Part shown: piece by piece, positions 12,734 through 64,000 of the stretch | Layout of the letters: every line of letters begins with the position of its first letter | How positions within the stretch are numbered: position 1 is the stretch's first letter | Assembly: GCA_004431415.1 (NCBI GenBank) | Contig: QPMI01000054.1 | Location: 248,001 to 312,000, forward strand | Direction of reading: 5' to 3' | DNA: 64,000 nt | From: Cyanophora paradoxa CCMP329 | Lineage: Eukaryota > Plantae > Glaucophyta | Notes under the pieces: generated by a model | What the model saw: the letters and a program-made list of their open reading frames with translations, nothing else | What the model was told of the DNA's origin: nothing | Databases searched by the model: none | Position numbers and translations under genes: made by a program

Positions 12734-15061
12734 AGCCGCCGGCGCTTCCTCGCACGAAGAATCGCGCAGACCTTGTAGGAGAGGCTGGCGAGGGCCCACT
12801 CGGCGCAGAGGAGGCGCTCCCACAGCATCGCGTGGATCAGCAGCTGCGCCCCGCCCCGTGAGGAGGCTAGCCGGCGGGCGGGCCGGGCAGAGGCGGGGGC
12901 GGGTGCGGGGTGCCGGCGCGCCTGTCTCCGGATCTCGTCAAAGTCGACGCGGTCCGCGAGGCCGTACCCGATCAGCACCTCTGCGCCGGGGGCAGAAGGC
13001 TCGGGAGGGGTACAGGGCGGGGGCGGGCGGGGGCGGGCGCGCGGGGTGCGGGGCGCGGACCGTCGAGACCGCGCTCGGTCTGCTCGAGCGTGTCCGTCGT
13101 GTCGTAGTACCTGCCCCGCGGCCGGGAGCACCGTCAGCGAGGCGGCAATCGCCGGCCGCTGGGGCGGGGGCCGGCCGCTGGGGCCGGGGCCGGGGCCGAA
13201 GCTGGGGCGGGGGGGCGGGGCGCACCGTGGGTCGAGGCGGGCCTCGTCGCCCTTGAGGTGGTGCGCCGCCGCCATCACCTGCCGCCCCGCCCGCCGCGCC
13301 CCGCTCAGCCGTAGGCGGGGCCGCGAGCGGCGGGGCCGGGCGGCAGAGGCGGGCGCGCCTTGCCGACGTAGTGGTCGGTGTCGGCCTCCGCGGGGCGCAT
13401 CAGCACCTGCTCGCGCGCGGCGGCCTCGGACAGGAGGCAGGGGGCGCGGGGCGGGGGCGGGGGGCGGGCCTCGGCGAGGTCGTGGAGGAGGGCGTCGAAG
13501 CGCGCCCCGACCCCGTTCTCCTCCTGCCCGCCCCGCTCCCTCAGCCCCCGGGGGTCCCCCGCAAGCGCCCGCTGCGCTGTGAGCTCTGGGGACCTTGTGG
13601 AGGCGGAAGAAGCGGAGGAGGAGGCGGAGGCGGGTGCGCGGCGTCACGTCCTCGCCCCGCCCCAGCAGCGCCGCCATCGCCAGCGCCCGCCGGTTCCGGT
13701 TTGACGCCGACGACGCGTTGTATGTCCCCTGCGCGCGCGTGTTGGCGCGGGGAGGGGCGGGCGCGGGCCGGCTGCGCCGGGGGCGGGGAGGGGGGCACCT
13801 GCTGGGCCATCATCTCCTCGAGCGGCAGCGCCGTCGAGTCGCTCAGCATGATCTGCAAGCCCCGCCCCGCCCCGCCCCGCTCAGCGCCGGGCGGGCGGGG
13901 CGGGGCGGGGGGCGGCGGGGCGGGCCTTGCGCTCGAGGCGGCGCTCCATCGCGTCCGCAAGCAGATCCTCCCGCGCCTGCAGACGGGCGGGGCGCCTCAG
14001 ACCCGGGGCCCGGAAGCGATGAAGGAGAAGCGGGCAAAGGCGCGCCGTGGTGCGCTGCTCCGGGGGCAGCAGCCGGTTGATGGGGTTGTACTCCTGCGGG
14101 GAGGGCGCTGAGGGGCGCGAGGGTCGAGCCGGGCGGGAGGAGGGGAGGAGGGGCGGGGCGACCTGGGCGAGGCGCTCCATGTCGACGCGCTGGCGGCGGC
14201 GCGCGCGCTCGGCCTCGGCCCGCCGCAGCTCCTTCAGCGCCTCGCTCCGCTCCAGCTTCAGCACACCCTGCACCAGCTGCGCGCCCCCCGGATCACGCGG
14301 CGCCCTGGCGCGAAGGAGGAGGAGGAGGAGGAGAAGCGAGGCGGCGCGCTCGCCTTGGCGGAGAGGGCGCCGAGGAGGCCGATGCCGATGCCGGCGATGA
14401 TCATCGCGATCGCCCGCGCCGCCAGCTGCGCCGTCCCCCGCGGTCGGCCGGAGTCTTGCGGGGCGGGGCGGGGGCGGGGGCGGGGGCGGGGACCTGGGTG
14501 GGGACGAGGTCGCCGTAGCCCACGGTGCCGATGGTGACGAGGGAGAACCAGACGGCCGAGGGGTAGTCCGCGAACACCGCCTGGTGCTCCTGCACGCCCC
14601 CCCGAGGTCTCAGCGCGGGCGGGGCGGGGCGGGGCGGGGCGGGGCGGGGCGGGGCGGGGCGGGCCTGCTCGACGACCTTGACGAAGACGGCGCCGACGAT
14701 GATCAGCACCGTCGCCATCGACGAGAGGAAGAGCCTGCCGGCCGGCGGGGGTGAGGCGGTGAGGCGGGGGGCGTGGGGGGCGTGGCGGGCGGAGGAGGGG
14801 GCGCACAGGGGCTTCTCGAGGGTCATGAGGACGAAGAAGTTCTGCTGCGAGACGCGCTTGTAGAGCCGCACGAGGCGGAAGAACTGGCGGGAGAAGAGAG
14901 CTCTTGAGCGGCTCAAGCGGGAGCGGAGAGGGGCGGGGCGGGGGGCGCCTTGAGGACGCGGAAGAAGCGCCAGAAGCGGGCGAGGCGGAGGGCGACGCCC
15001 CAGTTGAAGGCCCCGAAGGCCCCCGCCCCGGCACGTCCGTCACCACTGGCCCGCGGTCAGG

Positions 15062-15101
<40 letters not shown>

Positions 15102-18100
15102 GGGCAGGGCCGGCACGCACGCGACGGGATGTCGTACCAGTTCTGCGGTCCCGACAGAAGCACGCTCAGGCGAGGAGGCAGGGGGGCGGGGCGAGGGGGC
15201 CGGGGGTGCGGACGTGGCGGAGGAAGGCGCGGGCGGTGGGGTACGTCTCGCGGTCGCGGAGGGCGAAGCGGGCGACGAGGTCGACGAGGAAGAGGCCCGA
15301 GATGTACCAGTCCGTCCACGTGAACACCGCCTGCCCCGACCCCGCCGCCCCGGCCGCCCCTCGACCTCTCTCTCCTTCTGTGGCGGGGCGGGGCGGGGCG
15401 GGGGCGGACGAGGGTGGACTCGGGGAGCTCCTCGAGGCTCCAGAGCGGCACGATCGCCAGCGCGATGCTCGTCTGCGGGGGGCGAAGCTGAGCGGCGCCA
15501 GGGGCGGGGGCGGGGTTCGGGGGGCGGGCGGGGGCACGGCGGTGAGGAGGAGGAGGAAGCCCTGGGCGAGCCAGACGAGGTAGTCCCGCGCCGTGAAGCG
15601 GGGCGCCGCGCCCGGGCCCCGCCTGCTCCCCGCCCTCCCCGGGCCGCACGCAGCGCGCGAGGTAGAGCCGCTGCGCCTCGGGCGGCGGCGGCCGCACGCG
15701 GCTCCGGCTGCGCAGCTCGCGCGCGCCGAGCACCGCCGTCGGCGCCGCGACGAGGACCATCATCACCCCGCCCATGATGTCTGCCGGGCCGTGGTTGAGC
15801 GCGGGGGGCGCGGGCGGGCCCTGAGGCGCGGGCGGGCGCTAACGGAGGAGGACGGTCTCGCTCATGCAGGCGCCGGGGGCCTCGGAGGCGACGCAGGGGC
15901 CCGTCGCCGCGATGATGTCCGAGTTGTCCCCGATCCCGTCGTTGTCGCTGCCGCCCCCCTTCGGCGCCGGGGCCGGCGGCGCTGAGCGGGGGCGGGGGAG
16001 GGGGCCCACCTGTCGTGCCAGTCGTCGAGGTCCAGGGGGAACCGGTCCACCGCGTCTGCCGGGGTACGCGGCTCAGGCGCGCGGGGGGTACGGCCTCGAG
16101 GGCGGGGGGCCGCGCACCCCACACGCCGTCGGCGTCCTTGTCGAGGTCGAGGCGGGAGAGGGCCACGGCGCCGTACCCGTCCTGCGGGGCACGTCCGGCG
16201 GGGTACGGAGGACTCGGAGCGGGGCGGGGCGGGGAGGAAGGGGGGGTACCGGGGCGAGGGAGAGGAGGATGTCGGAGTGGAGGGCGGCGGCGAGGGCGGC
16301 GCCGGGGCGGGCGGCGCGGCAGAGGGCGGCGCGCCACGGGTCGCCGGCCTCCCCCGCGAACTTCACCGCCAACAGCTCCCCGCCCTGCAGGCGCCCCAGG
16401 GCGTGAGGCGATGCGCGGAGAGGCGTCGGAGCGAGCGCTCGGTTGGGTGGCGGGGCGCACCCGCCAGGCGAGGAAGCCGTCTGCGTGGGCGGCGGCGAGG
16501 GCGTAGGGGGCGGGCGAGGCCGCCCCGGGGGGCTCCTCCCAGGCCGCCGCCTCGTACCCGTACGCCCGCAGGAGGAACAGGGCGCCCATCCCGGGGCCCG
16601 AGGCGAGGGAGAAGAGGGCCCGGCGGCGCGAGGGCGCCACGCCGAGCAGCCGCGCGCCCCGCCCCGCGCCCCACTCGCCCGGGCCCACCGCCCAGCGCTC
16701 CTTGGCCGGCAGCCGCAGGAAGTGCACCGTCGCGTCCGCCAGGCCCAGCCCCGAGGCCGGCACCACGTCGCCCTCCGGCCCCAGCGCCAGCCGCTCCGCC
16801 GTCTGCACGTACGCCGCCACGCACCCTTCCGGGGGGTACGCGTGAGGCGGGGGGTACGGGGATCCGGGGGTGCGGCGGCGCGCTGTACCCGGGGGCGAGG
16901 CGCCCTCGTCGGAGCCGAAGGCGGGCGCGAAGAAGCTCGCGTTCGGCGCGAAGAGCCCCAGCCGCTCCTCCGCCCCCGTCGCCACGTAGTCTGGGGGTAC
17001 GCCATCGGCCGGCGAAAAGGCAAATAGGAAGAGGGGGTACGGCAAAAAGGCGCACAGAGGCGAACGGAGGCGAGGGCGGTGCCCGGGTCGAACTCCTGGT
17101 AAAGGATGTAGGGGCCGCAGGCGGCCGGCGCGGTCCGGTGCACCCGCCGCGCCCCCGCCGGCGGTATGTCCGGCTGGTTCCCCCCCGGCTCAGGGGAAGC
17201 GGGCGGGTGGGGCCCGGGGGTGTCCCGCGGGCGGGTTACCGAGAAAGGCAGCCTTGCGGCCGCGTCATAGAATCGCACGTCTGCGAAGTCGGTACCTCTG
17301 CCGAGCTCCGTCCACGAGACCAGAGCCCCGCCGGAATTGAGGTGCCTGCGGCCGGCGGGTCAGGGGCGGGTGGGGAGACCCCGGGGGGTACCGCATCGCA
17401 CCGGGGGTTCACGGAATCGAACGAGATCGCGCGGCGCTGCTCGGGAAAGGGCTGGCGAGGGGATACAGTTCAGGGGCGCGCGTTCCTCGAAGGGGGCACG
17501 GGGCGGCGGGCCTGCTTGTAGATCTCCCACGGGGGAGTGGTGAAGGCCGAGCTGCCGAAGTCGAAGAGGGCGCCGCGATAGCGCCGCTTGAGCGACTTTG
17601 CGGGGAGGTACGCGTCCGAAAGCCTGCGCCGCCGCTCGGGAGGCGGGCGGGCGGGGGAGGGCGGGGCGCAGCGGGCGGGCGCGGGGCGGACCCGCTCTGG
17701 TGGATGCCGTAGACTTTGGGGCTCCCGTTCTCGTCCACGTCGACGACGAAGACCGCGTCGCCGCTGAAGGCCAGCCGCCCGTCTGCGCGGCGCGCGTCGG
17801 CGGCGGCCCCGCGGCCGCCCGCAGGATCTAATCTAGCCCAAGGCTTTCCCCGCGCTCACCCCTCCGGAACGGGACGAAGGCGCCTTCGGCGAGCGATGAA
17901 GTGTTGTACCGCAGGCGCGCCTGGAGCTGGAAGGGCGGGAAGTGGCCCGCCGTGCTGCGCCCGACCCACGCTGCGGCGGGCGATTGGGCGCGGCGGCGCC
18001 CCGCGAGGCTCGGGCCGGCCGCTTACACAGGTCGCGCTCGTTAAGGTAGTTGCACTCCGCCTCGCGCACGTCCGTCAGCAGCGCGCGCCGCGGGTGGTGC

Positions 18101-18237
18101 CCTCTCGGGGCGAACTGGGCGGCGCGGTCCCGCTCGGCGTGCGTGGAGCCGAGCCGCACGACTACAGCCGCCCACGCTGCGAGCAGGAGGTAAAGGAGCA
18201 CTACGAAGCGCATCCTGGGGGCTCGCTTGCGGTTCAT
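11604..18237 (-). CDS. voltage-gated potassium channel (6TM plus an extra N-terminal TM) with signal peptide and large ectodomain
   Basis: Pore helix and filter SAVWFSLVTIGTVGYGDLVP (~14500-14560). S4 is LRLARFWRFFRVLK|FFRLVRLYK. S2 is TDWYISGLFLVDLVARF. S6 is RAIAMIIAGIGIGLLGALSAK. N-terminal hydrophobic leader RFVVLLYLLLAAWAAVVV. Confidence 0.85.
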
Positions 18238-27157: not shown

Positions 27158-29799
27158 TCACTGGAAGTTCATGTAGTCGTAGTTGATGCCGGGCCCGACG
27201 GAGGAGGAGCGGGCGCGGGCGCCGCGGCGCGGGGAGCTGACGGGCGAGTCGACGTCGAGGTCGTACCCCCCCGGGCCCAGCGAGGAGGAGCGGTTGCGGC
27301 TCTGGCTCTGCGAGCGCGCCGCGCGCCCCCGGCGCGGGCTCATGTTGTCCGCAAAGTCCAGCACCGGGGGCGACGCGGGGCGGGCGCCGGTCGGGGCCGG
27401 CGTCGCGATGCGGGGCCCCGGGTTGTGCTTCGCGTAGATCGGCACCCGCGGGTCCAGCGGGCACCGCACCCTCGCCACCTGCCGCGCACGCCCTCGGATC
27501 GAATTCGGGGGGGGGGGGGGATCGGGGGGGGGTACGGCGCGGACCTCGGAGGCGAGCCCCATGACGCGGGCGTACAGCGAATCGTACCGTGGGTCGGGGG
27601 GCAGGAGAGCCAGAAATAGCATGGGGAGCCCGTAGGCGCACGAGGCCAGAAGGCTGCGCGGCGGACCCGTCAAACACGACGGCGCCGGGGGGGTACGGGA
27701 AGGAAATGGCTCGCTTTTGGGGTACGTAGATGTCCCCCCCGTCGGACACGTGCGCGTTGAGGTGGCGGGGCACCACGCAGCGGTAGATCTCGTTCTCGAT
27801 GAGCTCTGCGGGGTACGCGATCGGATCGGGCAGGTGGGGTACGCGACTCCAAATGCACGCACTGGTGTCGGGGAAGACGCGCGGGTTCTCGCGGCAGTAC
27901 CTGCGCGATCGCCCCAGTGTCACCGGACTTGAGGGGGCGGAGCCGGGGGAGCGGAAGGGGGGTACGGGGCGCGCCGCCAGTTCTCGGAGTAGAGGTCGTA
28001 CTTGACGATCTCGACGAGCGTGACGCGCATGGAGGAGACGTCGCGGGGGTACCCCTCCGGCAGCCTGGCGCCCCGGGGTCGGTCGCGGGCCGCCCCGTCC
28101 CTTCGGGGGGCGCGGGTACGGGCGCACTGGACGGGGATGCCGGCGTTGGTCCAGTAGTCGATGGCGGCGTGGTAGACGTCCGTCACCTGCGCCCCCCGCC
28201 GGCCCCCGTCGGACCGGGTCGAGGCGGCGCCGCCGGGGCCGGGGCGCACGACGGGGTTGTAGTCGTCCTCGATGAACTCGCGGACGGTCTTCACCCGCTC
28301 CGCCCGGCACCGCCGCGCCAGCTCCCCGATCTGCCCCTCCGTCACGCCGGCCCCGGGCGGGGCCGCGCCCCCCGCCCGCCCCCGCCCACCTCGGCGAGGA
28401 GGCGGCGGCGGAGGACGGCGGACTCGACGTGGAGGTCCTCGGCGAGGTCCCGCTCCCCCAGCCCCAGCAGCGTCTTCCCGTCCACGCTGCTCGCCCTCAG
28501 CCGGGCGCCCTCGCGCCCCGCCCCGCGCCGGCTCGTGCGTGGGCCCACCTGTTCCGCTCGAAGGCGGGGACGAGGCGCCCCAGCTCCAGCGACCGCAGCC
28601 ACGCGCTCACGTCCGCCACCTGCCGCCCCGGCCCGGGTCAGCGGCGGCGAAGGCGGGAGGGAGGGGGGCCTGGAGGGCCGGTCCCCCGGCATGCTCAAAG
28701 CGGGGGCACCTTCATGGCGGCGGGGTCCACGGAGCAGCCGCAGCCGGTGGCGGCGGCGCCGCTGCCCGAGGGCGAAGGCCCCGCGGCGGGGCCGGCGGGG
28801 GCGGCGGGGGCGGAGACCGAGACGGAGACCATGGTGGGGGCGGGGGCGGGGGCGGGGGCCGAGCTGGCGCCGTGGAGGGAGGAGCCGCCGGTGGAGGCGT
28901 TCGAGGGCGCCGGCGAGCCCGACGAGGGCGGCAGCGGCGCTGCGCGGGCGCGGGGCGGCGGTCGGCCCTCGGAAGCGCGCGGGGGCGGGGGCGGCGGGCC
29001 GGGGCGGGGCGCGCACAGTGGATTGGGGCGAAGCGGACGACGGGCGGGGCAGGGTCGAGGTGCCCCGCACGTGCAGGGCGCCGGCACCGGCGCAGCGCGC
29101 GGGGAGGCGGCCCCGGCCCCGGGCGGGGGCGCCGAGGCCGGCGGGGTACGCGACACCTTCGCCGGGCTCCGCGGCGTCCTCGGCGGCTTCGGCGCTGCCC
29201 GCCCGGGGTAAGAGGGGGAGGGGGGGGAGAGAGAGCAGGGGGGGTACGTGCGCACAGGCGGGGGTGGCGGAGGGCCCGCGGAGGAAAGCGAGCGCGGCCT
29301 CGCCGCTGACGCGGGCCGAGGGCGGGAGCTCCGAGAGCGGGTTGTCCCTAATATCGAGGACCTGCGCGCCGCGGGCTCGAATCCGGGCGGGGCCCCTTTC
29401 GAACAGTGGTAAGGGGTTACCTCGAGGTCGAGGCGGGCAAGCTCGGGGGGAAGGTTCTGGAGGCCGTTGCCGGCCATGTGGAGGGATACCAGATTCGGGA
29501 GGCGGAGGATGTCCCGCCCGGGCACCTGCGCGCCGGCTCGAGTCCGGGCGGGGGCAGAAAGCGCGGGCCCGGCGGGGCGCGCTTCCTGGATCTGGTTCCC
29601 GTCGAGGTCGAGCACTCGGACCCTGGAAGCGCCTACGTATTCGATCTGCGGGGCGCGGGCGGGTTAGGGGCGGGGCGCCGGCCGGGCTGCGCCGGGGCGC
29701 GGCAGGGCGGGTCGGGCGGGCCTCGGAGGAGGGCCAGAAGCTGAGGCGGGAGTGGGAGAGGTCGAGCCTCCCCTCGTCTGCGATCCAGCCCTTGCCCAT
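27158..29799 (-). CDS. leucine-rich repeat plus SAM domain protein with an unassigned C-terminal domain
   Basis: LRRs LDLDGNQIQE, LVSLHMAGNGLQNLPPELARL and LDIRDNPLSELP. SAM-like DVSAWLRSLELGRLVPAF...VDGKTLLGLGERDLAEDLHVESAVLRRRLL. Confidence 0.75.
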
Positions 29800-30456
29800 C
29801 CTGCCTGCGCCACGCACTGAGCCACGCATATGCATGCCGGTGCCGTATGAACGCGGGTCCCGGAAGCGGGCGCGGCGGCGCCGAGTGATGCTATACCACT
29901 GTACTGGTGCCGCCGACTTCCTAGGGCAGCGTGCTAGGCGCGGCTGCGCTGCGCGCGATGACTGGTATGGGGAAGAATCGGCTGGCGTGCGGCGGGGGAG
30001 GCGGCGGCGGTGCCCCAGGTGCGGAAAAGCGATCCAAGAGCGTTAGAACGAACCAGGCAGCAGATGGGCGCGGTTGCCCGAAGTTGATGCTCGGCGCGCG
30101 GCGTGGGCGGGGTTGCGCGAGATGCTGGCTGGTTGTCGTATCTCGTTGGTTGGGGATGATCGGTTTGCTGTGCTAAAGGCTGCTCGGGCGACACAGAACA
30201 TTTACCGACCGCGCTGGGCGTTATAAAAGCCAGCCAGGTCGCACGGGTACAGGTAACGGCAGCGTATTGATTTGCAAGGTCGTCGAAGAAGCGCGGCCTC
30301 GGCGCCGGGCGGTTTTATAGCAGCGGGAGACCACCAGATAGCGGATTCGACCGCACAACGGCGTGGCGCTTGCGACCTTCAAACGGCCCTCGGCCGTGGC
30401 CCGCATCCAAGGAGCGCTGGGCGCGTGCAAAGCAGCAGCCGCGTATTTTGCATCTA

Positions 30457-33400
30457 ATGGCGGCCTTCGGATGCCCGCGCGCCGGGCCCGTGCATGCGCT
30501 AGCGGCCCTGGTGCTCCTTGCGTGCGTGGGAGCGGCGCTGGGGCAGACCAACGTCACTCTCCAGCGCGTGCGAGCGTTTAGGGTTATCTCCGGTGCGTGC
30601 GCGCCGCGGCGTGCCCGCAGCGCGCGCTAGCGCCCTCTCTGTTCACGGACCGCCAACGATATCGATGACGTACGCGTCGCTTCGCGGCGCGGCGGCACCG
30701 AGCTCTAGAGGGCGCGCGAAACCGCTGTCATCGTATCCATAGCGCCCGTCTAAGTGATCTAGAGTGCTTGTATGCTTTCGCATGCATCGGGCCTGGACCC
30801 TAAACCCGCACAGGGGTTGACGCGTCACGCGCGCGCTCGCGCCGGTCGCGAGCGGGGCGTCATGCGGTCGGGTGGCCCTTTGCTGCTGCTCAGCGACTGA
30901 TTTAGTTCCTTGGCCGCCCGCTACTTAAACGAGCACGGCTGTGACCGAGCCCGGCGCCCAGCCCGCCGTCGTTTCCCTCCCCCGAGCTCCGACTCCGACT
31001 TCTCTGGGGCCGCTCGGGCGGGCGGCCGTCGGGCGCTGACGGGGCCGGCGCGGCAGGCGGCCTCGCCGGAGACAACCGCATCTTCGGCCGCGGCGAGACC
31101 GTCCACGTCGCCCTCTCCTTCGCCTACGAGGACGTGCGCCCCCCCCCCCCCCCCCCTCCTGTTTGTACCCCCCGGAGGAATGACGGGAGCCCGGCAGGAC
31201 GTCTCGGCCGTCGCCGCGAGCTGCTCCTCCCTCGAGCTGAAGAATAACGCCGGCCTCAGGTTCAGCATCATCACCGAACTGTGCGGGCCCGTACCCCCCG
31301 CTTCTCCCCCTCCCGCCAAGCCCCGGCCCGCGTCCAGGCCCAGCGAGGTGTCGGACTTCTTCGGGGTCTACTCGATCTACGCCACGGCCACGGTGCGGCG
31401 CGCCCCGCCGCGCCCCGCGCCGCCGGCCCCGCGCCGACGCGGGGGCGGGGGTACACGCGCAGGTCACGGACGGGGCGGCGTGGGGCGAGGCGGGGAAGAC
31501 GGGGCTCTGGCTCAACCTGACGAGCGCGGACTTCGCGGACTGCGGCGCGGCCGCCGGCTTCGGCCTCGATATCGAGACCACGTCGGGGCCGGAGGCCGGC
31601 TACTACGCCGTGCGCCGCGTACCCGCCCCCCCTTTCCTCAATGAATTCTTATCCGCGCCGCGTGCGGGGCGGGGCGGGCAGTTCATGCTGAACCTCGAGG
31701 ACGAGGAGCTCGAGGACCTTGGGGTGCCCGGGGCCCGCCCCGCCCGCCCCGCCGCAGCGGCCCTGCCCGCGCTCACCCCGCCCCGCCCCGCCCGCCCTCC
31801 CGCCGCGGCGCAGAGAGCCCTCGTGCGGCCGCAGCTGCAGGCCCTCGGCGCCACCATCGTGCGCCGCGCCCCACGCCCCCCGCCCTCGCTCGCCCCGCCC
31901 TCGCTGAAGTTGGCGGGCAGCTGAACGCGGTCCCGGGCTCCGCCCTCTCCATCAACGACCTCCTCTGGGCGAGCCGGCCCGACCCCGGCCCGGCGCCGCC
32001 CAGTGGACGCGCGCGCCAGTGCTGAGACGCCTCCAGGTCGTCGTCTCGTTCACGGGCAAAGTGGACGACCCCCTCCCTGCCGGCTGCGTCCCCTCCCTCG
32101 CCCTGTGCGCCCGCCCCCGCCCGCCCGCCCCGCCCGCGAGCGCGCGCCCTGACCGCCGCGGCCGCCGCCTTCAGCAACTTCGCGACGAACACGACGTGCG
32201 AGCCCCCACGCGCCCCCGAGGCCGCTCCCCGGCCCCGAGGCCGCTCCCCGGCCCCGCCGCCGACCCCGGGCCGCGCCGGGGCGCGCATGCGCAGGCTGAC
32301 GTACGTGCCGAGGGCGACGGCGCTCGAGCAGACGGGCGCCTCGGAGGAGATCATCAACGACCGCACCCTCGTCCTCTCCAAAAAGTGGGACCTCGTCTTG
32401 GGCCCTTTGGCTGCGCTCCGCTTCGCCTCCGTTTACTGACCCTGTACCCCCGCAGGATCGCTGAAGGGGACCAGACGTCGGCGGCGACGATCGGGGTGCA
32501 GCTGCCGGTGGCGAAGGCGCTCCGAATCACGGGCGCCTCGTGCAAGGCGACGGGCATGGTGCTCGACGCGGCCTCCGCCGCCGTCGAGAAGAGGGACTTC
32601 AGCGCACCCTCCAACCCGCCCATCAAGCGCATGACACCCGACAGCGTCGAGGTCGGCCCGGGGCCCCCGGCAGCCCGCACGGGGCCGGACCTTGTTGTCG
32701 AGCCCGGGCGGGGGCGCAGGTGACGGACTTCTACCTGCACCCCGTGCGGAGCTACGAGCCGGCCTCGAGCCCCAAGCTCTACATCTCCGGCGTCTCTGTC
32801 GACACGCTCCGTGCGCCCCGCCCTGCAGCCCCGGTCTCCCCGCCCGCCCCGTGCTTCGGGCTCAGGCGGGCGCCCCCTGCCCGGGCCGGCAGCCTCCACG
32901 CTGAGCCAGGTCTCGTCAAAGAAGGCCGCCGGCGCCTACTACGTGCGCCTATTTCCTCGGGACCTTGAGCTAAGCATCGATCCGAGTTGGTTTCGCGATC
33001 CCGATCCGCAGGCGGGGGATATCATCGACATTTTCGTCAGCTTCAACCGGTGCGCTGCTCATTGTGCTTTATTTGTATTTCCATGTTTAACTTCTCCCCC
33101 GCGCAGGCCCGTCTCCTTCTTCCTCCTCACGGACGGCACCTCCACAACCTACGGGTGCCCTGCCCCTCCGCCTTCTACCCCCCCTTCACCCCCCCCAGCC
33201 CGCTCCCTCCAATGGCGATCGCGAGGTTCACGCTTCGCTTCGTTCGCAGGAAGCCGTACCTGGACGTGAACACGGGGGGCGTCGCGAGCTTCATCGGCCA
33301 CGCCCCGCGCGACACCGTGCGACTCTGAGGCTCCCGGCTGCACATCTCGCGATCGATCTCGATCAATTTTATTTGAATTTCCGCTGAATTCCCGCGCATG

Positions 33401-36400
33401 CAGGCGACGCTGGTGTTCCGGTACGTGGTCGGCTCGGGCGAGGCGACCCCACAGGACTCCTTCCTCGAGGCGAGCCCGCGCCCCGGGCCCGGACCCCGAG
33501 CGCCGTTCGCTTCTCGGGCCGACGAACGGCTCCCCAGGTCACGGCCTTCGTGCTGAACGGCGGCTTGATTTCCTCCCCCAACGGCCTCGACGGTCCGCTG
33601 CGCCTATCAAACTTCCCGACGCTCCACCGCCGATGCGGGCTGACGCCGCGCGCCGCGCAGCGAAATTCGACCTGCCGAGGGTGGGCTCGCCGTCGGGGCT
33701 CAGCGCCAGCCGCATCTCCGTGAACCGGTTCGAATTCACCGCCGCTCGCCGATGCGCCCGCGCGAGGCCGACGCCGGCGCCGGCGGGCGCGCGCGGCGGG
33801 GCAGGTCGTCGTCGATCGTGTCGCTGCGGGTGTTCGGGGCGGTGGGGGGCGGCGCCGACGTCTTCTCCGTCGGCGACATCGTCCGCGTGCTCGCCTCCTT
33901 CGACGACACCGTCGACGACGCCGTGCGCCTGTGCTTAAATCTAAGATTAGCTAATAATAAATTAAAGCTCTTGACCAAGCTTCAAGATCAATTCTATACG
34001 CTTTCGTCGATTTGCTCGGGCCACCTGACGTGCGCGCCGGCGTACGTATTGCCCGCGCGCAGTCGCTCGACGCCGACGGCTGCAGCCCGACGCTCGCGAC
34101 CTCCATCGGCACCTTCGCGCGCGTCCCCCGCGACACCTTCAACAAGCAGATCAGCGGTGCGGCCGCCCCCAGCCGCCGCTTTCCGAGCGCGCGCCGCGTC
34201 CGATGGCACACCCCGTCGACGTCGGCCAGGGACCGTGGCGGGCCCCTACGACATCGTCTTCGAGCGCGCCGTCTCCGAGTCGGACGGCGTCATCGACTCG
34301 ATTGCCGTCTCCAAGCCGTGCGCGCCTCCCGCTGGACACCGACTGCGTCTCCCGCCTGCTTTCCGATGGATTTCCCCTCCGCCGCGTGCGCAGGTACGAC
34401 AAGGCGATGAGCCTGGACGGCTGCCCCGCCTCCTGTGCGCCGGCCCCCGGCCCACGACCCCGCACCCGCCCCAGCCGATGGCGGCGAGGGCTGACGGCTC
34501 GGGCAGCGCGCATTCGGACGCCGGTGCAGCTGGGCAAGGCCCGCGGCTTCTACCCCCTCCTCGCCTCCTCCGACGGCCTCGCCGCGGACATCAGGGCGCG
34601 CACGCGGGCCGGCGCCCGCGGGTTCCAGCCCAGTCGCCCCCGCCCCCTCTCACGCCGGCCGCACGCAGACCGACACGGTGCCGGCGACGGTGGTCGGCGT
34701 CACCAGCAAGCTCCAGAACAACAGCACGCCCCTCGGGGTGCGCGAGCGAGCGCGGGCACTCGCGCCCGAGCCCCCCTTCCCCTCCGCGCGCCGCGCCGCG
34801 TCTCATCTGCAGCGCGGCGCGCGCGCGCGGGCAGCCCGGGGACGCGATCGACATCCTCGTCGCCTTCTCGAAGCCCGTCAAGTTCGGCCTCCTCGTGCGC
34901 CCCGCCCCGCCCCGCCCCGCCCGCCGGTCGATCCCGACGGCCACGCGCCGCCATCCTCTCAACCCCGCCTCCAGACGGACCCCATCCTCTTCAACGACTT
35001 CGAGAACAAGAACTACGACGCCCGCCGCTACGGTCGGCCCCGATCGCAGCCCCCTGCCACCGGGCCTCCAGCCCAAGGACACGCGTGCTGAGGCGAGTGC
35101 GGATGCTCGCAGGGACGCCGCGGCTGATCCTAAACGCCCCCGCGTACGCGTACTTGATGGGTTACGCCAACGCCGATGCCAAGGCGAGGCGGCCCCGCCT
35201 CGCTCGCCCACCCACCCCCGCAACGGAAAGCTGATGTTCGGCGCAGACGGCGCTCCTGTTCCGCTACATCGTCTCCGTCGGCGAAGGGTTCGTACATACC
35301 GACCCTGCCCGCCCTACCCAACCCGACGTCGATCGACGCCGCGCCGACGACGGGGCGGGGCGGGGGGTCAGGATCAACGGGCTGAACGGGACGGGCCCGG
35401 CCTTCAAGTACCTCGACGCGATGAGCTCGCTGGGCCTCGACCTCTACGGCGGCTCCATCACCACCCTCAGCAACGCGATCGACGCGCGCCGCAGACCTAC
35501 ACCCTCCCCCAAACCAGCGTCGCCGTCGCTCACGGAGGGCGCGCAGGCGAACCTGGAGCTGCCGGTGGAGCCGGCGCCCAACAGCCTCTTCGCCTCTCGC
35601 GTCTCCATCCGCAACGCCGGCAGCAAGGCCCGCCCGCGCCGCCCCGCGCCCTCGACCGGCTGTTCGTGCGGGCGCGCGAACGCTGATCACAAGCCGCCTT
35701 CTTCAGATCCCGCCCTTCGGGTTTGATCCGGACAGGCGCCCCGGTGACCAGAACATCGTGCGGCCCGGCTTGGCTTGGCTTTTATTAAACAGCCGGCACC
35801 GCCTTTCGCGACCCCGGTTCGCAGTATGGAACCAAGTCCTTCGGCGTCTCGGGCCGCCGGCGGACGCTGCTGGGGGTCGCGGCGAACCCCAACCCCACCG
35901 AAGTCCGGGTCAGCCAACAAACAGGCCCCCGGCCACACTCCGCCCGAGATCAATTTGGAGCGACGCCGACGCCGGGGGCGGGGCCTGGGCGGCGCAGGTG
36001 CTGGCGCAGTTCAACAGCGTCTTCGAAGTGGCGGAGAGGACGCAGTCCTACAAGGCCGACCTCTCCACCGTCGCCGAGTCCGCCAACGCCGCCGCAGCGA
36101 GGGCGACCGCTGACGGCCGGGCGGCGCGGGCCGCGTGCGGCAGGTGGTTCGACCCGCGCTTCGTGACGCCGACGCTGCCGAGCGTGAGCGAGAACGGGAC
36201 GGCGATCCTCTCCTCCATCTGGTGGCCCCGCCTCACCGTCATCAACCTGCGCGAGCGGCTGCAGCCCTTCGACCAGCGCGTCCTCATCTTCAACGTCCGC
36301 CCCCGCCCCGGGCCGGGTCCCCCGCCGAGCATTCCATTAATTTTCCTGTCTTTACACCTCTTCTGATGCCGGATTTGCGTTCGACCCCCCGCAGAACGGG

Positions 36401-38747
36401 ACCGTCCAGATGCACGGTGCGCGCGCGTGCGCAATCGATGTCGTTCCGCCCGCGGCCGACACCGCGCCGCGCCGCAGAGCGCTACGTGATGGCCTTCTCG
36501 GTCTCCATCGACGCCCGCAAGTTCCCCTTCGACGAGCAGAACTTCTACGTCCAGGCGCGCCCGGAGCGGCGCCCCGTTCCGGATCCGCCCCGCCCCTCCG
36601 AATCCTCAGAGTCTTCACACGCCCCGTCGCATGCGCAGATCCGCTCCCAGACCTTCGACCGCACCAAAGTCACGTGCGCGCTCAAGCCCCGCCGGGGCGC
36701 GCGCGGGGGCCAGCCTTTCCTTCAAAAATTCGCGTTCGCTGATCATGAGGGGGCGGCGCCGCGCAGCTTCAAGCCGCTGCCCCAGGACCTGATCGACATC
36801 CAGGAGAGCGTGCTCAAGAACATTAACGAGCCGGCCTTCTCGTTCTCCAAGTACTCCCAGGCTCGAAAACTGTATTATTGACGTTCATCGTTCTGGATTC
36901 TCGCGACGCGGCGGCGCAGACCATCGGGACGGTCGGTGTCGGCGCCTTTGCCAACCACGCCATGCTCACGGTGAGCGGAACCGCGCAAAATACATATAGA
37001 ACTGCTTCTCTGCGTGCTCCCGCGTGCTCTCGCGTCGATCGCGTTTCCTCGCGCCTGTTGCGTTCCGGGATCCGTCGCCGAGACGAACTTGTAGACAATA
37101 CTAATCCTGGGCCTGTTCTGAGCGGCTCCAAGTGATTTCGAAGTGATGTTCGCCCCTCGATCGGCAGGTCTCGTTCCTGGCGACGCGCATCTCGACGTAC
37201 AACACGATCAACATCATCCTCCCGCTCCTCTTCATCTGCATCTCCGTCTGCGGTGCAGCCGGCGGCCGATCCGCCGCGGCGCCCCGCGCGCCCTCGCCCT
37301 CGTGCTCACTCGAGCCCGGCTCGGCCGGCAGCGAGCTTCTCGATGCCGATCAAGAGCGACGCCCGCACGGCGACCTGCACTGGCGCCCTTGCCGCCACCC
37401 TGGCTTTCGCCTGTCCGCACCTCGCCCCGGGCCCCCCTCGAACCTTTCCTGCTCACCCGCCCCCGCACCGCAGTCGTCGTCGCCACGGTCTCGCCCCCCG
37501 TGAACTAGTGCGCCGAAAGCGAGCCCGAATTCGCGCCCGCCCCGAGCGCGAGATGCGAGCCGCCGGCGCCGCGCCGCCGCGCCAACTCGCCGCGCGCAGC
37601 ATAACGAAGATCGGGCGGCTCGTCTTCCAGGCGTACGCCTTCTCCATTGCCGGCATCCTCATACAGACCTTCCTCCGGTGCGCCCCGCCCCGCCCGCGCG
37701 CGCGGTCGGGGGACGCGGCCGGCGCTCGCGGCTGACCGCCGCGGTCGGTCTCGCCGGATGTGCGCAGGTACGTGGTGTGGGTGATCGACGAGTCGAGCCG
37801 CAAGGTCTACGACGACAAGAACGACGAGCGCGCCCGCATCTACGGTCCGCCCCGCCCCCGCCCCCGCCGGCCGCGCGCTCGGGCCCGCCTCGGGACCGGC
37901 GACCGCGTCGCCGACGGGGGCCGGGGCGCGCGGCAGACCACATCCTGGACACGGTGCTGGCTTTCAAGCGGAAGATGCGGGCGGCGGGGGAGGGCCACCT
38001 CCTCGCCAAGGTCCCCTTCGACGTCCGCCCCGCCCCCGGCCCCCGAGCGCGCGCCCCGGCGCTAGCCCCGGTCCTGACGCGGCCGAGCATGCGCAGGACC
38101 CGGCGGATTCCTCCAAGGTCGACAAACGACACTTCGATGGCTCCTTTCTGCCGTTGACCCGCCCCGCCCCGCAGGCCGCCGGGGGCGATGCCGTGCCCGT
38201 CGTGTCCGTCGCGGTGAGCGCCGCGCCCCGCGGTGCCGGGCGCCCGCTCCGCCTCGATCGGGCGCCGACGGGGCCGGCAGCCGAGCGTGGACGTGCTCTC
38301 CATCACGACGCAAGTGGAGGCGCAGGAGCGCCCGAAGCACAAGACGACGGCCGGCGTCCTCCCCAACCCCGCCCGCCTCAACGGCACCAACCCGCCCACG
38401 GCGCGCCCCCGCCCCTTCCGACATCCCGCCCGCGCCGCCGCGCGCGCGCTGACGCGGGCTCCGGGGCTGGCCGGCAGCTCCCGCTGCGGCAGTACTTCCT
38501 GCTCGACTTCTACTGGCGGAAGCTGCAGTTCATCCCCCTGGACCGCATGAAGCGGGAGCAGTACCTCGGTGCGCGACCGCGAGCCTTCGCAATCCGATGC
38601 AGCGCTAGCGGCTAGAGCTCTCTCCCCGGCCCCTCTCACTGATCATGATCCCCGGCAGACAACCTTATCGACGCGAATTTCTTCTTACGCATTCTCTTCT
38701 GGCTCACCTTCATAATTAGCACCGCCTGCTGCATCGCCTGCCCGTGA
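30457..38747 (+). CDS. Cys-less (Pro-loop) pentameric ligand-gated ion channel with five N-terminal Ig-like repeats
   Basis: Signal peptide, then WFDPR, IWWPRLTVIN, NGTVQM and DARKFPFDEQ. M1 is NIILPLLFICISVCASF. M2 to the M2-M3 loop is SDARTATCTGALAATLAFAFVVATVSPPVNYITK. M4 is FFLRILFWLTFIISTACCIA. TGA at 38745-38747. Confidence 0.85.
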
Positions 38748-39329
38748 CGCGAGCTGGAATTCGATCAAATTAACGATTTCATAGTCACCGCAAGAGCTAA
38801 CGATTACTGGGGTGAACTACGGTGGGGCGAACGCTCAAACAGAAAAGAATGCAAGCGAAAAGGTTCTAGATATCGATTTAGCTATTGTTCTAGCCTAGTA
38901 GATCTCCGTCATTTATACGCGAGAACAATTATGCAATCGCAAGTCTTGACTTGGCAGTGTTGGCACAAGTTGGCAGCAGGCTTCACGAAGCTCATGATCA
39001 GCCTCAGATCAGGGATATCGCGCGAGTTTGCGTGTACTTTTTTTTTATCGCGCGAGTTTGCCAGTTAACGTTGCGTGTATACGTATACGGTATACGCACT
39101 AGTACGTATTACGTTCAAAAACGGTTACGCTACGTATACGTGTATACGTATACGGCGCACACCTCTATATATATAGCTAGACTGTGGCTAGCTATAGTCC
39201 GATCGCGAGGTTTTGGCCGCCTCGCAACTTGGCAACTTTATCAATACAATAACTACGTATATACGCCCGTACATGCATATGTAGGCTGTAGCTATAGCCT
39301 GTAGCCTGTGCACGTGGTCTTCTATGGTC

Positions 39330-39816
39330 TGTAGCCTCACCTAGAACCCACGCTTCTATGATCTCGGAAGGTGGGGCCGGGAATGTGTTTATACATGCTT
39401 AGAATTACTTTCTATATCACCAAAGACTCCGCCTCCGGATCCTCTTCGTGATCGCCTTGTTGTTCCCCTTACTTGTCTGCTTCCTGTGATATATCTTTCT
39501 CACTTCTGTCCTCCTTGCAATTGGTCGGTTTCGTCTATATAGCTACTTTAGATCTCGGTGCTGGTTCTAGCTCTTTCTCGTGTCTCTCTATTTCCTCTTC
39601 TTTGCCTTATAACTCTGTAGCTCGATCTCCGTCTCGGATTTTCTCGTCCGTCGTCTCTTCGAATTCTCGGACTCTCTTCCTCTGCTGTCGATTTTGGCTC
39701 TTTGTCTAGTGCTCTTGCCTTAGTTTTTCTTATTTCCGTCGTTCTCTTTGTTGTATATGCCCCCTGGGCAGGTGTTGGTGTCTAGAGGCTGTGGCCGGTA
39801 ATTCACCAAAAAAAAA
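39330..39816 (+). mobile_element. 3' portion of a poly(A)-tailed non-LTR retroelement (LINE 3' UTR or a second SINE)
   Basis: Pyrimidine-skewed tract ending ctagaggctgtggccggtaattcacc-A9. These 26 nt are identical to the tail of the SINE at 52530-52733. 5' boundary uncertain. Confidence 0.55.
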
Positions 39817-40329
39817 GACTAGTACTTAGAATATAATTATAAGCCGTAAAATCTGCCAGGGATGACCCCTGCCCCCCCCTCTGTCGACGGACGTCGAATC
39901 GCACCGACATCCAAGTTTATCCAACCGCGGTGGCCATGGCTTGAGCCTCGATCGCGAGGACCGACAGTTCCGAGAACTTCCGACATACGCGTACGGTATA
40001 TCCCTAACTGAGGCTGACTCCCTGAGGGCCGCTGAGGCTGTGTTCATCAAATGCACGGCATCATTGGGTGACATTGGCAATTTGGCATGATATCGATTCG
40101 CGATATCGCGCAAACTGACACCACCAGAAACTTTTTTTTGAAAGATGCATTCATATGACTACCCATTTTTACCGGTACCTTAACTACTAGTAGTCTACTA
40201 CCGTTCACGGGTGACGCAGCTGGCCTGGCAGCGTGACAGGCAAGCTGAGGGCCTCAGGGGGCCTGAGGCAACTGAATCGTAGTACTGAGTACTTACGAAT
40301 TCGCCGAAGGCTCCTAGGAGTTCTAGCTA

Positions 40330-40591
40330 CCGTGTGGCACTATAATACCGCGCCCACTTAATTACCGCGGTACCAAATTACCGCGCCGAGAATTTGTTAA
40401 AACGCGGTAATTTGGTACCGCGGTAATATGCTGCAGCCAATTCGCTCCATACAGTACCCCCCACAATTACCTCCCCATACAAGCCTGAAGTTTTTTAAAA
40501 CGCGGTAATTTGGTACCGCGGTATTTTGGCCACCCTCGGGCCGGAGTTTTTACCGCGGTAATTTATGCCGCGGTAATTTAGTGCCACACGG
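40330..40591. mobile_element. Tc1/mariner-pogo-type MITE
   Basis: TA on both flanks. TIRs CCGTGTGGCACTATAATACCGCG and CCGTGTGGCACTAAATTACCGCG match at 21/23. Internal (ATT)ACCGCGGTA repeats. Confidence 0.85.
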
Positions 40592-40989
40592 TATAGGATC
40601 CGAATTTCCGAAATCGGTCGACTCAGTGACTCGGAACGGTACCGGGTACCGCGCGTACGTCGAATCCCGCGCGCCCGGAGTACGTCCTGGGATTCTGGCT
40701 GGGAACTCCGGGGACCGGGGGACCGGAGTCACCGGACTCGGGAACTCCTAGGCTTTCCTAGCTATAGCGAGTCCTAGACTCCTAGCCTGACTCCTAGGCG
40801 CACGGCGCCGGCGGTCGCGCGCCGCGGCGCGCGTCCGCGACGCGTCGACGTCGTCGTCGTCGCGTACCCCGGTACCACCGGCGGACCGGCGGCGGTACGT
40901 CGTCGTCGACTCGACGTCGAGTCGATGTCCGATCGACTCAGTCCGAGTCGGACGGTCCGACCGTCGGGTCCGGCCGCCGGCGTCGCCGC

Positions 40990-41550
40990 CAGTGATTGAT
41001 ATACTTTCATTGCGCAAGCTTTCACTGTGAAAGCTTTCTAGAAAGCTTTCTGAAAGCTTTCATGCCCAAAAACGCAGGTGAAAGCTTTCGAATTCAGTTT
41101 CGTTGCAACGGGGGGGTACCCTACAGCAGGCCTTCCGACGGAGTTTGAGCAAGAAAACGACGGATTTGAGCAAGCTAGAGTGCAAGTTGTGCAACAAAGC
41201 ATAATGCCACACGGGGCAAACGGTTGCATGACGTTGTGGAAGGGCGGGGGCCGCTGGGGAAGCTTAATTAAGGTGGCAGCCTCCGGATCCGGAGCTGTAC
41301 CCCCTCTTCCACTGAAACTTAGCTGAAAGGAGCTCAGGGGCACAACAGGGCCATGCGGGCTTTAAGATTGCAGTTGGAGATGACATTGGAAAGCATAGAC
41401 TTGTGTTTGGACGCTTGCTTGAAACAGAATATTTCCGGTTTGGCTGGGCAAGGTTTCCTTGTATGGGAGCAATCCTTTCAGAAAGCTTTCATGAAAGCTT
41501 TCATGAAAGCTTTCAGGGTGCCGGCGGGGAGTAAACTTTCACAAACACTG
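40990..41550. mobile_element. non-autonomous hAT element
   Basis: CAGTG(A/T)TTG termini, an 8-bp TSD GTCGCCGC (40982-40989 and 41551-41558), and subterminal GAAAGCTTTC palindrome arrays at both ends. Confidence 0.85.
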
Positions 41551-41742
41551 GTCGCCGCGTCGGACGGTCGACTTGTCGCGATCGACGGCGGGACTCGACG
41601 CTCACATGATCACTGAGTCGACTCTCCGATCAGACTCCTGGGAGATCCGATGATCCGACTCCTGGGAGTCATGGGCTACTGAGTAGTGCTGTGCAGTATG
41701 TGCAGAGTCACTGCAGACCGTGCAGCAGCACTGCAGCTAATA

Positions 41743-41943
41743 CTGGAGAGCTAGAAATATTTAGTGGGCTGCATATTTATAGTACTAATTATATAAACTT
41801 TTTTGAGTGATCTACTAAATATTTCATACAGGGGTACCTGGGGTAGGCCCTCTCTCCGCCTACTAAAAATTTACCAGCTGCTAAAGTGGCAGTTTTGGCG
41901 AAGTACTAATTATTTTCCTGTACTAAATTAACCAGTTCTCCAG
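41743..41943. mobile_element. MITE with TA target duplication
   Basis: TA|CTGGAGAGCTAGAAATATTTAGT ... ACTAAATTAACCAGTTCTCCAG|TA; imperfect TIRs and an AT-rich interior. Confidence 0.65.
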
Positions 41944-44022
41944 TAGCCAGCTATGCATGCGCAGCCTGCATCATGGGAATATTAATATGATGGGATTCAC
42001 TGATGAGTCATGGCGCCGGCATGCGCATTCGAATTCATGATTCTCGAGTCTGCAGCTGCAGCCTGCAGGCTGCAGCCCCGCGGCCTGCTAGGGCGCACTG
42101 CGGCAGGCTGCAGCTGCAGGCTGCAGCAGCTGCAGTGCAGCCCCAACTTTGGCCCCCAAGGGCCAGCTCTGACAGCCGGGCGCCAGCTGCAGCTGCAGCA
42201 TGAGCACTGCGGCACTGCGGCAGGCCCATCATCACGCCGCCCATCACGCAGCCCCTGCCGCCAAATTGGGCGCCAATGCCCGACATCACGGCGACATGCG
42301 GCCGCGGCAGCTGCCCGCGCGCGCTAGCGCAATGGCTCAGCGCCTAGTCGCGTAATTTGCGGCGTTAATACGCACGGTCCGATCCGGTCCGGTCGATATA
42401 TATATATCGCGCATGTACGTATACATGCATGATGCATGATACCGCATGCGCAAAAGCCATCTAGCGGCAGCTGCAGCTTGCGTCGCCAGCTGCAAATATG
42501 TGTCTACGCCTCGCGATCGTAATTCATGATTAGGATCATCACTGTTTGCACGACGCCGGCGTCGCGATCGATATTGATGCTGGACAGGTCCCAGCAGGCC
42601 ATCGCGCTCGCCCTTGGCGAAATTCACGTGCGCACGGGCGTGCGTCTGCTCCCGCCCGCGGCCGCGAGCTTGCGCTTGCCCGGCCCTGGCCCATGGCCAG
42701 TCGAACGAAGCGACCCGTCTAGATCTGGCGGAGGCCTGAAGGGCGCGGTCTGATCGCCTTTGTCATATGCATCAGTATCGATATTTCCTCTTTAACGCGC
42801 AGGTTACCGTCCCCTCATACACGGTCGCCGCTTCAGCTGGTTCGTAGCTCGAGCTCTGCTGTAATTTCTAAATGATGCACTGCTCGTATGCGGCGCCGGC
42901 GTGTACGTCGTTTGCTTTCAATTTAGACAAGATTAAATGCATGACACGGTGATCACATATGCATGCACACACGCGTACGGGGCTCTGCGCATGCTTGCTT
43001 ATAGATACGTATACGTATATCTACGTACACGCATGCGTATACGTACACTTGCACGTGCACGTGCATGCGCAGCTGCAGTACTAGTTATGATTCATTTTAC
43101 ACACATATATATACGTATACGTCTAGATCTATGAAGACTAGATCTAGCTATAGATTTGCATGATCACGATATAGATCATGATATAGATCATGTGGATCCG
43201 GAAGCTTAAGATTGATTTCTGACGGTATCCGTCGCAGCTCATGATCATCGCAGCGTAGCAAAGAGGTTGCTGCGGCATATTAGGCCTATAGTTAGGACTG
43301 GGCCTTCGACATCCAGAGCAACGCCAGCCCTGGAGCTTCCGGATTCGGGCTGTAGTCTGCTCGATCGCGAGCTCGCCCATTTGGCCCAGGTACCGTATTA
43401 CCTTCCCCATTAAAACGTTGTATTAAATCGCATTGTCACTGAGTACCTATCCGCGTTATACTTATTCCTTTGATCATGAATTCGAAGTCCTTACAAAGTA
43501 ATACGATATTCAAATCTAACAAAAATGTTGCAACTGCAACTTGCATCTATCCATCCAGCCGCAATCTCTAGGCTAACTAAGGGAAGCACTGCGAGGGATG
43601 CCCAGGCTTAGGTGTCCCTCCTCTAGATCTGGGCTCTTAATCTTGGACGTCGACTCACGATCACGCCCGAACTTTTCCAGACACGGAGGACGCGACAGCT
43701 ACATTCAAACTCGAATTCTTCCGGACCCATGCATTTCGAAGGCACTTCAAAGCCGTTGACGTTGGTACGTGTTAAATTGGCGATCATGCCACAATCGCGA
43801 GTGCTCGAGCTCAAGGCTCAAGCTTAAGCTCGCGGAGGATAAATGACGTTTGAGATGATTTACTTTTTTAAAACGAGGACTAGAAAAGTCTAGAATTGCT
43901 TCAAGGCTTGATCGCCTGCATCGATAACCTTTTCTTAACTTCCGAAACTCGTCACTATTTTTGAGAGTCTACGATGGGGCGGACTCCACGCAGGCATTAA
44001 TTAGAAAGCTTTTTCGTTGCAG

Positions 44023-63094: not shown

Positions 63095-64000
63095 ACGTCG
63101 GCGTAGAGCCCCGTGAGCTGGTCCGCCACCACGGCGCCTGCGGGGGGGGGGGGGGGGGGGGGGAGGGGTGCTCAGGGGCGGCGGGGGAGGCGGAGGGGAA
63201 GGCTGGGGCACCGCGGAGGTCGAAGGCGGTGGGGCCCTGGACGGTCAGCGGCTGCTTGTCCGTGTCCTCCCCGTCCATCGGACGGTACCGGAAGTTCAGC
63301 GTCTGCGCGGCGCGCCCGGGCCGTTCGTGCCCGCCCGAGAAGGGTACAGGACGGTGCAGCGGCGGGAAACTTCGCACCCGGGGATCGCGGACTTCGTCAA
63401 AGGACGCGAACTCGGCTATACCCCCGGACGAGAGGTCAATGCGGGGGGGAGACGCCGGCGTCTTGGGGTCCATCGTGACGTCACGGCTGAACGTCACCTG
63501 CCCGGGGGCTCGGCGCGGGGCCGGAGGCCGGAGCGGAAGCCGTGCGGGGGGGTACCTGAATGCGGATGGCGGGGGAGGAGGAGTCGATCGTCTTGCCGAG
63601 GTACGCGGCCGAGACCTGAGGGGGGGTGCGGCGTTGGCGGGGCCGGGGCAGGGGTACGCGGGCGGCGCGGCGCACGTCGACGATCTTCGGCGGCGCGGTG
63701 AAGACGAAGAAGGGCAGCTCGAGGCGGGTGGGGGCGGGCTGCAAGGGGGTACGGGATCAGCTCGGGGTAAGATGGGTAGGGGGGGTGGGCCCGCGCGGGG
63801 GGCTCGCTCGCCTTGAGGGCGAGGCGGGCGGGGAAGACGCCGTCGCGGCTGCGGATGGAGGGGCCGCGGGCGGCGAGGGCCTCGGGGTCCTGAATGGCGG
63901 TGGGTGCGCCCTCCACGGGGGGCGCCACGGCGTCGATGGGGTTGAAGGCGGTGGGCGTCGCGGGGTCCAGCCCGCAGACGGCCCCCTCGGGGATCTCGAA
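63095..64000 (-). CDS. partial gene entering from the right edge, encoding the same Ig-like repeat as the pLGIC ectodomain
   Basis: AIRIQ|VTFSRDVT...PPRIDLSSGGIAEFASF...|TLNFRYRPMDGED...AFDLRG|AVVADQLTGLYADVT. Confidence 0.7.

Follow-up and report, generated by a model that had tools for sequence, protein, structure and literature searches.

The window analysed here is a stretch of 64,000 nucleotides from the glaucophyte Cyanophora paradoxa CCMP329, a swimming freshwater alga (contig QPMI01000054.1, positions 248,001 to 312,000, forward strand). Its plus strand carries a gene, corresponding to the database protein P0001, whose product combines a signal peptide, five repeats predicted to be immunoglobulin (Ig)-like, and a complete ligand-gated ion channel of the pentameric kind (pLGIC) devoid of the Cys-loop cysteines. 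In eukaryotes, an Ig-stalk ectodomain on a Cys-less pLGIC is apparently undescribed. No account of an Ig-stalked eukaryotic pLGIC was found in the literature searched, subscription journals being mostly outside reach, and the C. paradoxa genome paper makes no mention of ligand-gated channels (PMC6704402). This agrees with an earlier note on the same DNA, which had not recognised the architecture as described; the layout is shared with a few other protists.

A single spliced gene for repeats and channel

The limits of the gene (30457–38747) and its signal peptide, both proposed in the earlier note, are borne out by a 52-exon model built by coordinates, in which the initial ATG and the stop codon fall exactly at the two ends. 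The spliced frame comprises 3,858 nt with zero internal stops, and its GC content at third codon positions is 0.95. A CAG acceptor closes all 51 introns, which open with GT (42) or GC (9) donors sharing a common downstream consensus; their median length is 74 nt, and the sole long one (464 nt) directly follows exon 1. P0001, which is EukProt Cyanophora paradoxa g17739, was retrieved when two channel exons were searched exhaustively against proteins; it is identical to residues 46–1285 of the model. Exon 1 (30457–30592), encoding the signal peptide, is absent from this public model. Whole-protein searches started from P0001, and the exons of the model were searched one at a time; no Pfam or PDB match came from a single exon, but exons are too short for this to be evidence of absence.

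Signal peptide, repeats and channel belong to one expressed gene with a single spliced transcript, as the earlier note had supposed. The RNA evidence consists of assembled contigs from runs presumed to be RNA; the contigs have canonical splice sites and a single open frame. In run X17 (record 3), one spliced contig of 5,050 nt joins the signal peptide, the repeats and the channel domain, from exon 1 through channel exon 36 and beyond, with offsets matching the model at exons 5, 12, 13, 21, 22, 31 and 36. All four RNA-like runs (compared over 30440–36430) show the predicted splice joints, among them the ones that connect repeat 5 to the channel, and these runs contain 0.28 of the sampled words, where 0.278 is expected given exactly 52 exons. 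The 3' third (36431–38747) is covered by P0001, by a contig loose end entering exon 38 and by the word share; a transcript contig extends about 1 kb beyond the stop codon. It is hardly credible that two adjoining genes, one for a secreted repeat protein and one for a channel, have been misread as one. The genome is indeed gene-dense with overlapping untranslated regions (PMC6704402), and assembled contigs alone cannot prove a single molecule, but the spliced frame runs unbroken across the repeat–channel junction in the four runs, and an equal fusion exists in intron-free transcripts of other organisms and in two Cyanophora paralogues.

Features of the stalked channel gene, in window coordinates
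Feature	Position	Strand	Remarks
Whole gene	30457..38747	+	52 coding exons, 1,285 aa; C. paradoxa g17739 plus unannotated first exon
Signal peptide, residues 1–28	30457..30540	+	Hydropathy peak 10–28; first in-frame ATG
R1, type A (Cys80/Cys144)	30541..31723	+	Most diverged, then acidic linker; leave-one-out 12 bits vs 3.6 shuffled
R2, type A (Cys228/Cys300)	31814..32797	+	E 4e-13, profile without this gene
R3, type B, no Cys, bacterial-like	32798..33719	+	tblastn to giant bacterial proteins E 3e-5 to 1e-2; bacterial-copy profile E 6e-19
R4, type A (Cys543/Cys607)	33720..34595	+	E 5e-26, profile without this gene; all-beta in AlphaFold model
R5, type B, adjoins channel	34669..35615	+	Bacterial-copy profile E 6e-8; AlphaFold model
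pLGIC ligand-binding domain, without cysteines	35707..37191	+	Pfam PF02931, E 1e-15
RRRTLL, residues 832–837, basic-aliphatic, candidate site-1-protease-type site	35855..35872	+	8 residues before strand beta1
Pro-loop motif FPFD, residues 949–952	36522..36533	+	Alignment of members
Transmembrane helices M1–M3	37198..37774	+	Pre-M1 Arg1026, M1 Pro1038, M2–M3 Pro1082; M2 0' Arg, 9' Ala, 16' Phe
Cytoplasmic M3–M4 loop, ~150 aa	37775..38669	+	
M4 helix and stop codon	38670..38747	+	Hydropathy

The channel domain and its agonist pocket

Eight family members were found (P0001, P0002, P0003, P0005, P0006, P0007, P0010 and P0014), with channel cores 38–47% identical. Word-based homologue searches gave only P0001 and P0003, or nothing, and thus missed members found by exhaustive search, so that the size of the family is underestimated. 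Two metagenome scans revealed no relative, and the ESM Atlas no large cluster with this architecture. Four further candidates (P0004, P0008, P0009 and P0012) were set aside because they match only the Ala-rich intron part of the query.

Judged by sequence, the channel is a Cys-less Pro-loop pLGIC, a relative of the nicotinic and GABA (γ-aminobutyric acid)-type channels. The Neur_chan_LBD profile (PF02931) matches P0001 with 58 bits against a cut-off of 26, and ELIC is the best match of the C-terminal 474 residues among solved structures (E 7.5e-20). An FPFD-type motif, an Arg before M1 and Pro residues in M1 and between M2 and M3 are the most conserved residues of the superfamily (PMC4795631); all are present, as is the β9 aromatic residue (Phe in EPAF), and these hallmarks, judged against Table 1 of the same paper, are invariant in 7 of 7 members. 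Hydropathy places a signal peptide before the extracellular domain and four transmembrane helices after it, the helices being found in a homologue model as well. Pfam Neur_chan_memb has no match in P0001, although it matches the homologues P0006 and P0007. Val and Phe occupy the Cys-loop cysteine positions, and the extracellular domain contains zero Cys; membership of the Cys-loop receptors was rejected, the two Cys 13 residues apart around the Pro loop being absent. Furthermore, the predicted model of the two-repeat homologue P0003 resembles DeCLIC, GABA-A, ELIC and GLIC chains. The PF02931 match, the four helices and the long M3–M4 loop uphold the reading of the earlier note, namely a complete pLGIC with FPFD and without the Cys-loop cysteines.

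ELIC from Dickeya/Erwinia and the Cys-less protist receptors (PMC4795631) likewise consist of a ligand-binding domain and M1–M4, with FPFD lacking flanking Cys, the pre-M1 Arg and the M1 and M2–M3 Pro. Compared with ELIC, the Cyanophora protein has about 800 extra extracellular residues, an M3–M4 loop of eukaryotic type, Arg for E131, Thr for E77 and Ala at 9'. Cys-less pLGICs are known in protists, and the survey of Jaiteh et al. (2016), which discarded terminal domains, makes no mention of Cyanophora or glaucophytes (PMC4795631).

With regard to the agonist pocket, the roles of the ELIC residues were taken from PMC3316889. The E131 position in loop B is Arg in 8 of 8 members and the E77 position in loop A is Thr in 7 of 7, while the F19 position is Gln/Glu and the Y38 and F133 positions are mostly non-aromatic (Gln/Ser at F19/Y38/F133). 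The R91 position is still basic, and the F188 position in loop C is still aromatic, but His in this gene. The orthosteric positions are highly conserved across the family, and the stalk-less P0002 carries an identical loop-B Arg-Ser. An amine-gated pocket of the ELIC, GABA-A or GlyR type was discarded, the loop-B Glu (E131/E155), the loop-A Glu and the aromatic cage having been lost. Equating the loop-B Arg with R133 of GLIC was also rejected, as it stands at Pro+11 (ELIC E131) and not at Pro+13. Since E131 has become an invariant Arg and E77 an invariant Thr, two cage aromatics are lost and the positions are conserved, GABA or another amine-type cation is an unlikely agonist, and the changes would point to an anion or a polar molecule, or to protons or calcium.

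In the pore, 6 of 7 members carry Ala, Gly or Ser at M2 position 9' and 5 of 7 carry Phe at 16', and –2' is Asp in this gene. Because the usual 9' Leu is replaced in those six, the gate probably lies at the 16' Phe, with a wide pore, and the acidic –2' residue leans weakly towards cation selectivity. The loss of the 9' Leu, together with the His in loop C of this gene, might also suit an adhesion or coat protein that conducts no ions and has retained its pLGIC body only to anchor it in the membrane as a pentamer. We regard such a protein as very unlikely, given that all residues coupling the extracellular and transmembrane domains, and a small-residue M2 pore face, are kept at 38–47% identity; as every coupling residue is intact, the channel would be expected to assemble and conduct.

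The repeats, their family and their bacterial relatives

The earlier note had described five repeats of one pattern. The number five is real, but they are of two related kinds (profile–profile probability 95%) in the order A-A-B-A-B, and the consensus given in that note fits only R3 and R5, so that five identical repeats were rejected; its starts fall on the second strand of the repeats, each domain beginning about 20 residues earlier. Type A is the diverged kind, and its cysteine pairs presumably form a disulfide. Shuffled sequences reach at most 2.3 bits with the type-A profile that recognises R2 and R4. That the repeats are Ig-like β-sandwiches, as proposed at the outset, is well supported by modelling, with R1–R3 assigned by homology. 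The AlphaFold model of R4 and R5 (100 aligned sequences; mean predicted local distance difference test score, pLDDT, 82; predicted template-modelling score, pTM, 0.75) is all-beta in both domains. Its nearest solved folds, all Ig-like, are the FdeC adhesin, the S-layer protein SbsC, invasin, InvE and CopC, at middling Z-scores of 4.5–6.5. In the ESM Atlas it finds SbsA/Big-type Ig clusters (TM-score 0.5–0.67), with Big_5/Big_12 in a minority of members only. Searches of the repeat sequences against the PDB gave only chance S7 matches. An adhesive role of the repeats may be suggested by analogy.

Type B directly adjoins the channel in all stalked members, whose stalks count from 2 to about 9 modules. 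An A-B-channel unit is present in Colponema vietnamica (P0003), a record from a predator transcriptome in which prey sequence is possible, and in two intron-free transcripts (P0005 and P0007); P0006 is a 5'-incomplete member. As to the Cyanophora paralogues, P0014 (2,611 aa) carries three A-A'-B blocks, and the annotated part of P0010 reads B-A-B, its annotation looking 5'-truncated. In the tree, R3 and R5 each pair with the corresponding P0010 repeat, and the repeat expansion is thus older than the P0001/P0010 duplication. In P0002, from a metagenome contig, the signal peptide leads straight onto the channel and no repeat is present on the locus; this locus (L003:8001-9136) is split by apparent introns and adjoins a gene resembling those for non-ribosomal peptide synthetases (NRPS-like).

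Type B aligns end to end with a bacterial module (30–39% identity, profile probability 99.6%), which bears out the statement in the earlier note that large bacterial surface proteins contain a similar repeat: R3 and R5 match giant proteins of this sort. Its carriers include Azospirillum, Microvirga, Kosakonia, Niveispirillum and Acetoanaerobium, along with bacteria of many other phyla, and up to 16 tandem copies stand within 6 kb. The host proteins, of the DUF4347/Big_12/Big_13 type and 2,300–4,900 aa long, are often encoded beside TolC/HlyD genes, and it is by size and this neighbourhood that they appear adhesin-like. The fold, too, is similar to that of such giant type-I-secreted surface proteins (SbsA Big_5, CopC-like clan). 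Ten B repeats gave no Pfam or NCBIfam match, and so fall in no named Big family. In Longimicrobiales and Marinacidobacterium (L021-L031), many separate giant frames, several per genome, consist of nearly nothing but the type-B module, at 11–16 copies per 6 kb. In contrast to the Cyanophora gene, no fusion to a pLGIC was seen at the bacterial loci examined, and only eukaryote proteins showed type A with its Cys pair. No match to the repeat-5 exons (introns in frame) was found in viral contigs or plasmids, nor to the B repeat in phages. Eukaryote B repeats fall on one side of a branch from 30 bacterial copies (support 91/84, unrooted), compatible with a single old acquisition; a named bacterial donor was rejected, the tree being unrooted and the eukaryote copies lacking a sister group.

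DeCLIC from Desulfofustis (PMC12664993, PMC9897478) is likewise a pLGIC with a large N-terminal extension of tandem β-sandwiches, and is the top Foldseek match of the P0003 model, although outside the channel this is not a superposition (root-mean-square deviation about 45). Its two lobes are jelly-roll, bacterial and periplasmic, whereas the modules of the Cyanophora family are Ig-like, number 2 to about 9, are eukaryotic, and bear Cys pairs and glycosylation sequons as well as a candidate cleavage site. DeCLIC-type jelly-roll lobes were rejected for the stalk, since the folds matched by the repeat model are Ig-like and the matches listed include no DeCLIC chain. N-terminal pLGIC domains have been described as prokaryotic, the DeCLIC jelly-roll pair being the only one characterised (PMC12664993).

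Elsewhere in the window, exons on the minus strand at 63720–63090, part of another gene entering from beyond the window end, encode a type-B Ig module (colinear profile matches of 12 and 9 bits; by eye, five short exons can be read). No channel follows this copy in the window, so Cyanophora employs the module in further proteins as well. A divergent neighbour at ~29300–29800 (minus strand) has leucine-rich-repeat-like exons (LxxLxLxxN in translation) and no Pfam match on the unspliced frame. The A and B repeat profiles have no match at 11604–18237. The block at 38800–44000, with a GC content of 46–54% against about 70% and short palindromic and tandem units, is probably transposon-derived or repetitive DNA.

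Gating and the role of the stalk

Between the last repeat and strand β1, RRRTLL lies in the loop that follows a conserved FPP-x-x-(Y/F)D segment, itself part of the channel domain. It fits the SKI-1/S1P (site-1 protease) consensus R-X-aliphatic-Z (PMC8310232), and SKI-1/S1P-like subtilases are reported throughout Archaeplastida (PMC6713707). Similar motifs in P0010, P0014 and P0003, 8–12 residues before β1, bring the total to 4 of 7 members; P0007 lacks the loop, and P0005 and P0006 have no clear motif. A stricter form requiring an upstream basic residue, a pattern chosen post hoc, has a background of 0.00–0.06 per like-sized window, compared with 0.2–0.3 for the literature pattern alone. The stalk may be cleaved here, but as three members lack the motif and the stricter pattern is post hoc, we treat cleavage as a lead only.

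Were the stalk a pro-domain or a shed ectodomain, a Golgi subtilase of site-1 type would cut after RRRTLL, so that the five Ig modules come free as a soluble protein and a mature channel of ELIC size stays behind, and the stalk would serve folding, trafficking or silencing before the cut. The common place and low background of the motif, the subtilases across Archaeplastida, and the N-terminus left by such a cut, which would align with mature ELIC from residue 6, speak in its favour. We nevertheless find it doubtful in view of the members without the motif, of the background of the literature pattern and of a candidate site proposed from sequence.

The reading that we favour, with a probability of about 0.5, is a chemically gated Cys-less pLGIC whose Ig stalk is an accessory for tethering, positioning or tuning; the conserved pocket and the loop-B Arg-Ser shared by the stalk-less P0002 speak for it. 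A pentameric channel in the plasma membrane, or in a flagellar or vacuolar membrane, would open its pore when a chemical cue (an anionic or polar ligand, protons or calcium) reaches its own ligand-binding domain. The stalk, some 20 nm long if extended, would bind surface glycans, matrix or another cell, and so place the channel or tune it, in the way that the N-terminal domain of DeCLIC tunes gating (PMC12664993); it might be nicked at RRRTLL and yet stay attached via the FPP-x-x-(Y/F)D segment. Several points weigh against this proposal. Ligand, current, localisation and oligomer are all putative; with eight members, conservation rests on few sequences; pore selectivity is not predictable from sequence in this class (PMC4795631). 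The middling fold Z-scores and a shared Ig fold do not amount to a binding function, and in the bacterial proteins the modules may serve simply as spacers.

Alternatively, binding of a surface, macromolecule or cell, or a pull on the stalk, might open the pore directly. Adhesion G-protein-coupled receptors (GPCRs) and polycystin-1 have long adhesion-type ectodomains, possibly cut beside the membrane unit, and in one variant a nicked, tethered stalk would possibly be tugged off as in these proteins. The likeness is a functional analogy only, namely a signalling membrane module that bears a long ectodomain of adhesion type: the Cyanophora protein has no GAIN/GPS domain or homology, and its candidate site is of subtilase type. 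Contact gating would fit a stalk of adhesin-like Ig modules, an A-B pair packing as a defined unit in the model, the place of type B immediately next to the channel in every stalked member, the loss of the amine cage, and a candidate cut site inside the first loop of the channel domain, a position that could allow a cut stalk to stay bound. Against it, most members have a long unstructured linker after the last repeat (low pLDDT at 314–390 in the homologue model), one relative has no stalk, and module number varies. We know of no pLGIC opened by contact or force through its ectodomain, and on balance consider this mode unlikely. Against the contact-, adhesion- or macromolecule-gating put forward in the earlier note, taken as the sole mechanism, stand the stalk-less P0002, the range of module numbers, the conserved pocket and the protease-like motif in 4 of 7 members; the 25 Ig modules per pentamer that it envisaged assume a homopentamer and an uncut stalk. 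The broader idea is that glaucophytes and alveolates share an old family of protist receptor-channels, in which contact or force would act on the gate through a nicked but tethered Ig stalk and the re-purposed neurotransmitter pocket would read the state of the stalk in the manner of adhesion GPCRs; it is quite unlikely.

No pLGIC of any unicellular organism has a known biological role (PMC4795631). The present family has expressed eukaryotic members, and stalks of 0, 2, 5 and about 9 Ig modules occur naturally on channels that are 40% identical, which makes the role of the ectodomain in gating, trafficking or sensing testable by deletion or swap. The conserved, charge-reversed pocket and the small 9' residue suggest a ligand class and a gate geometry not yet known, and if contact or force does gate the channel, the superfamily would gain a new mode of activation.

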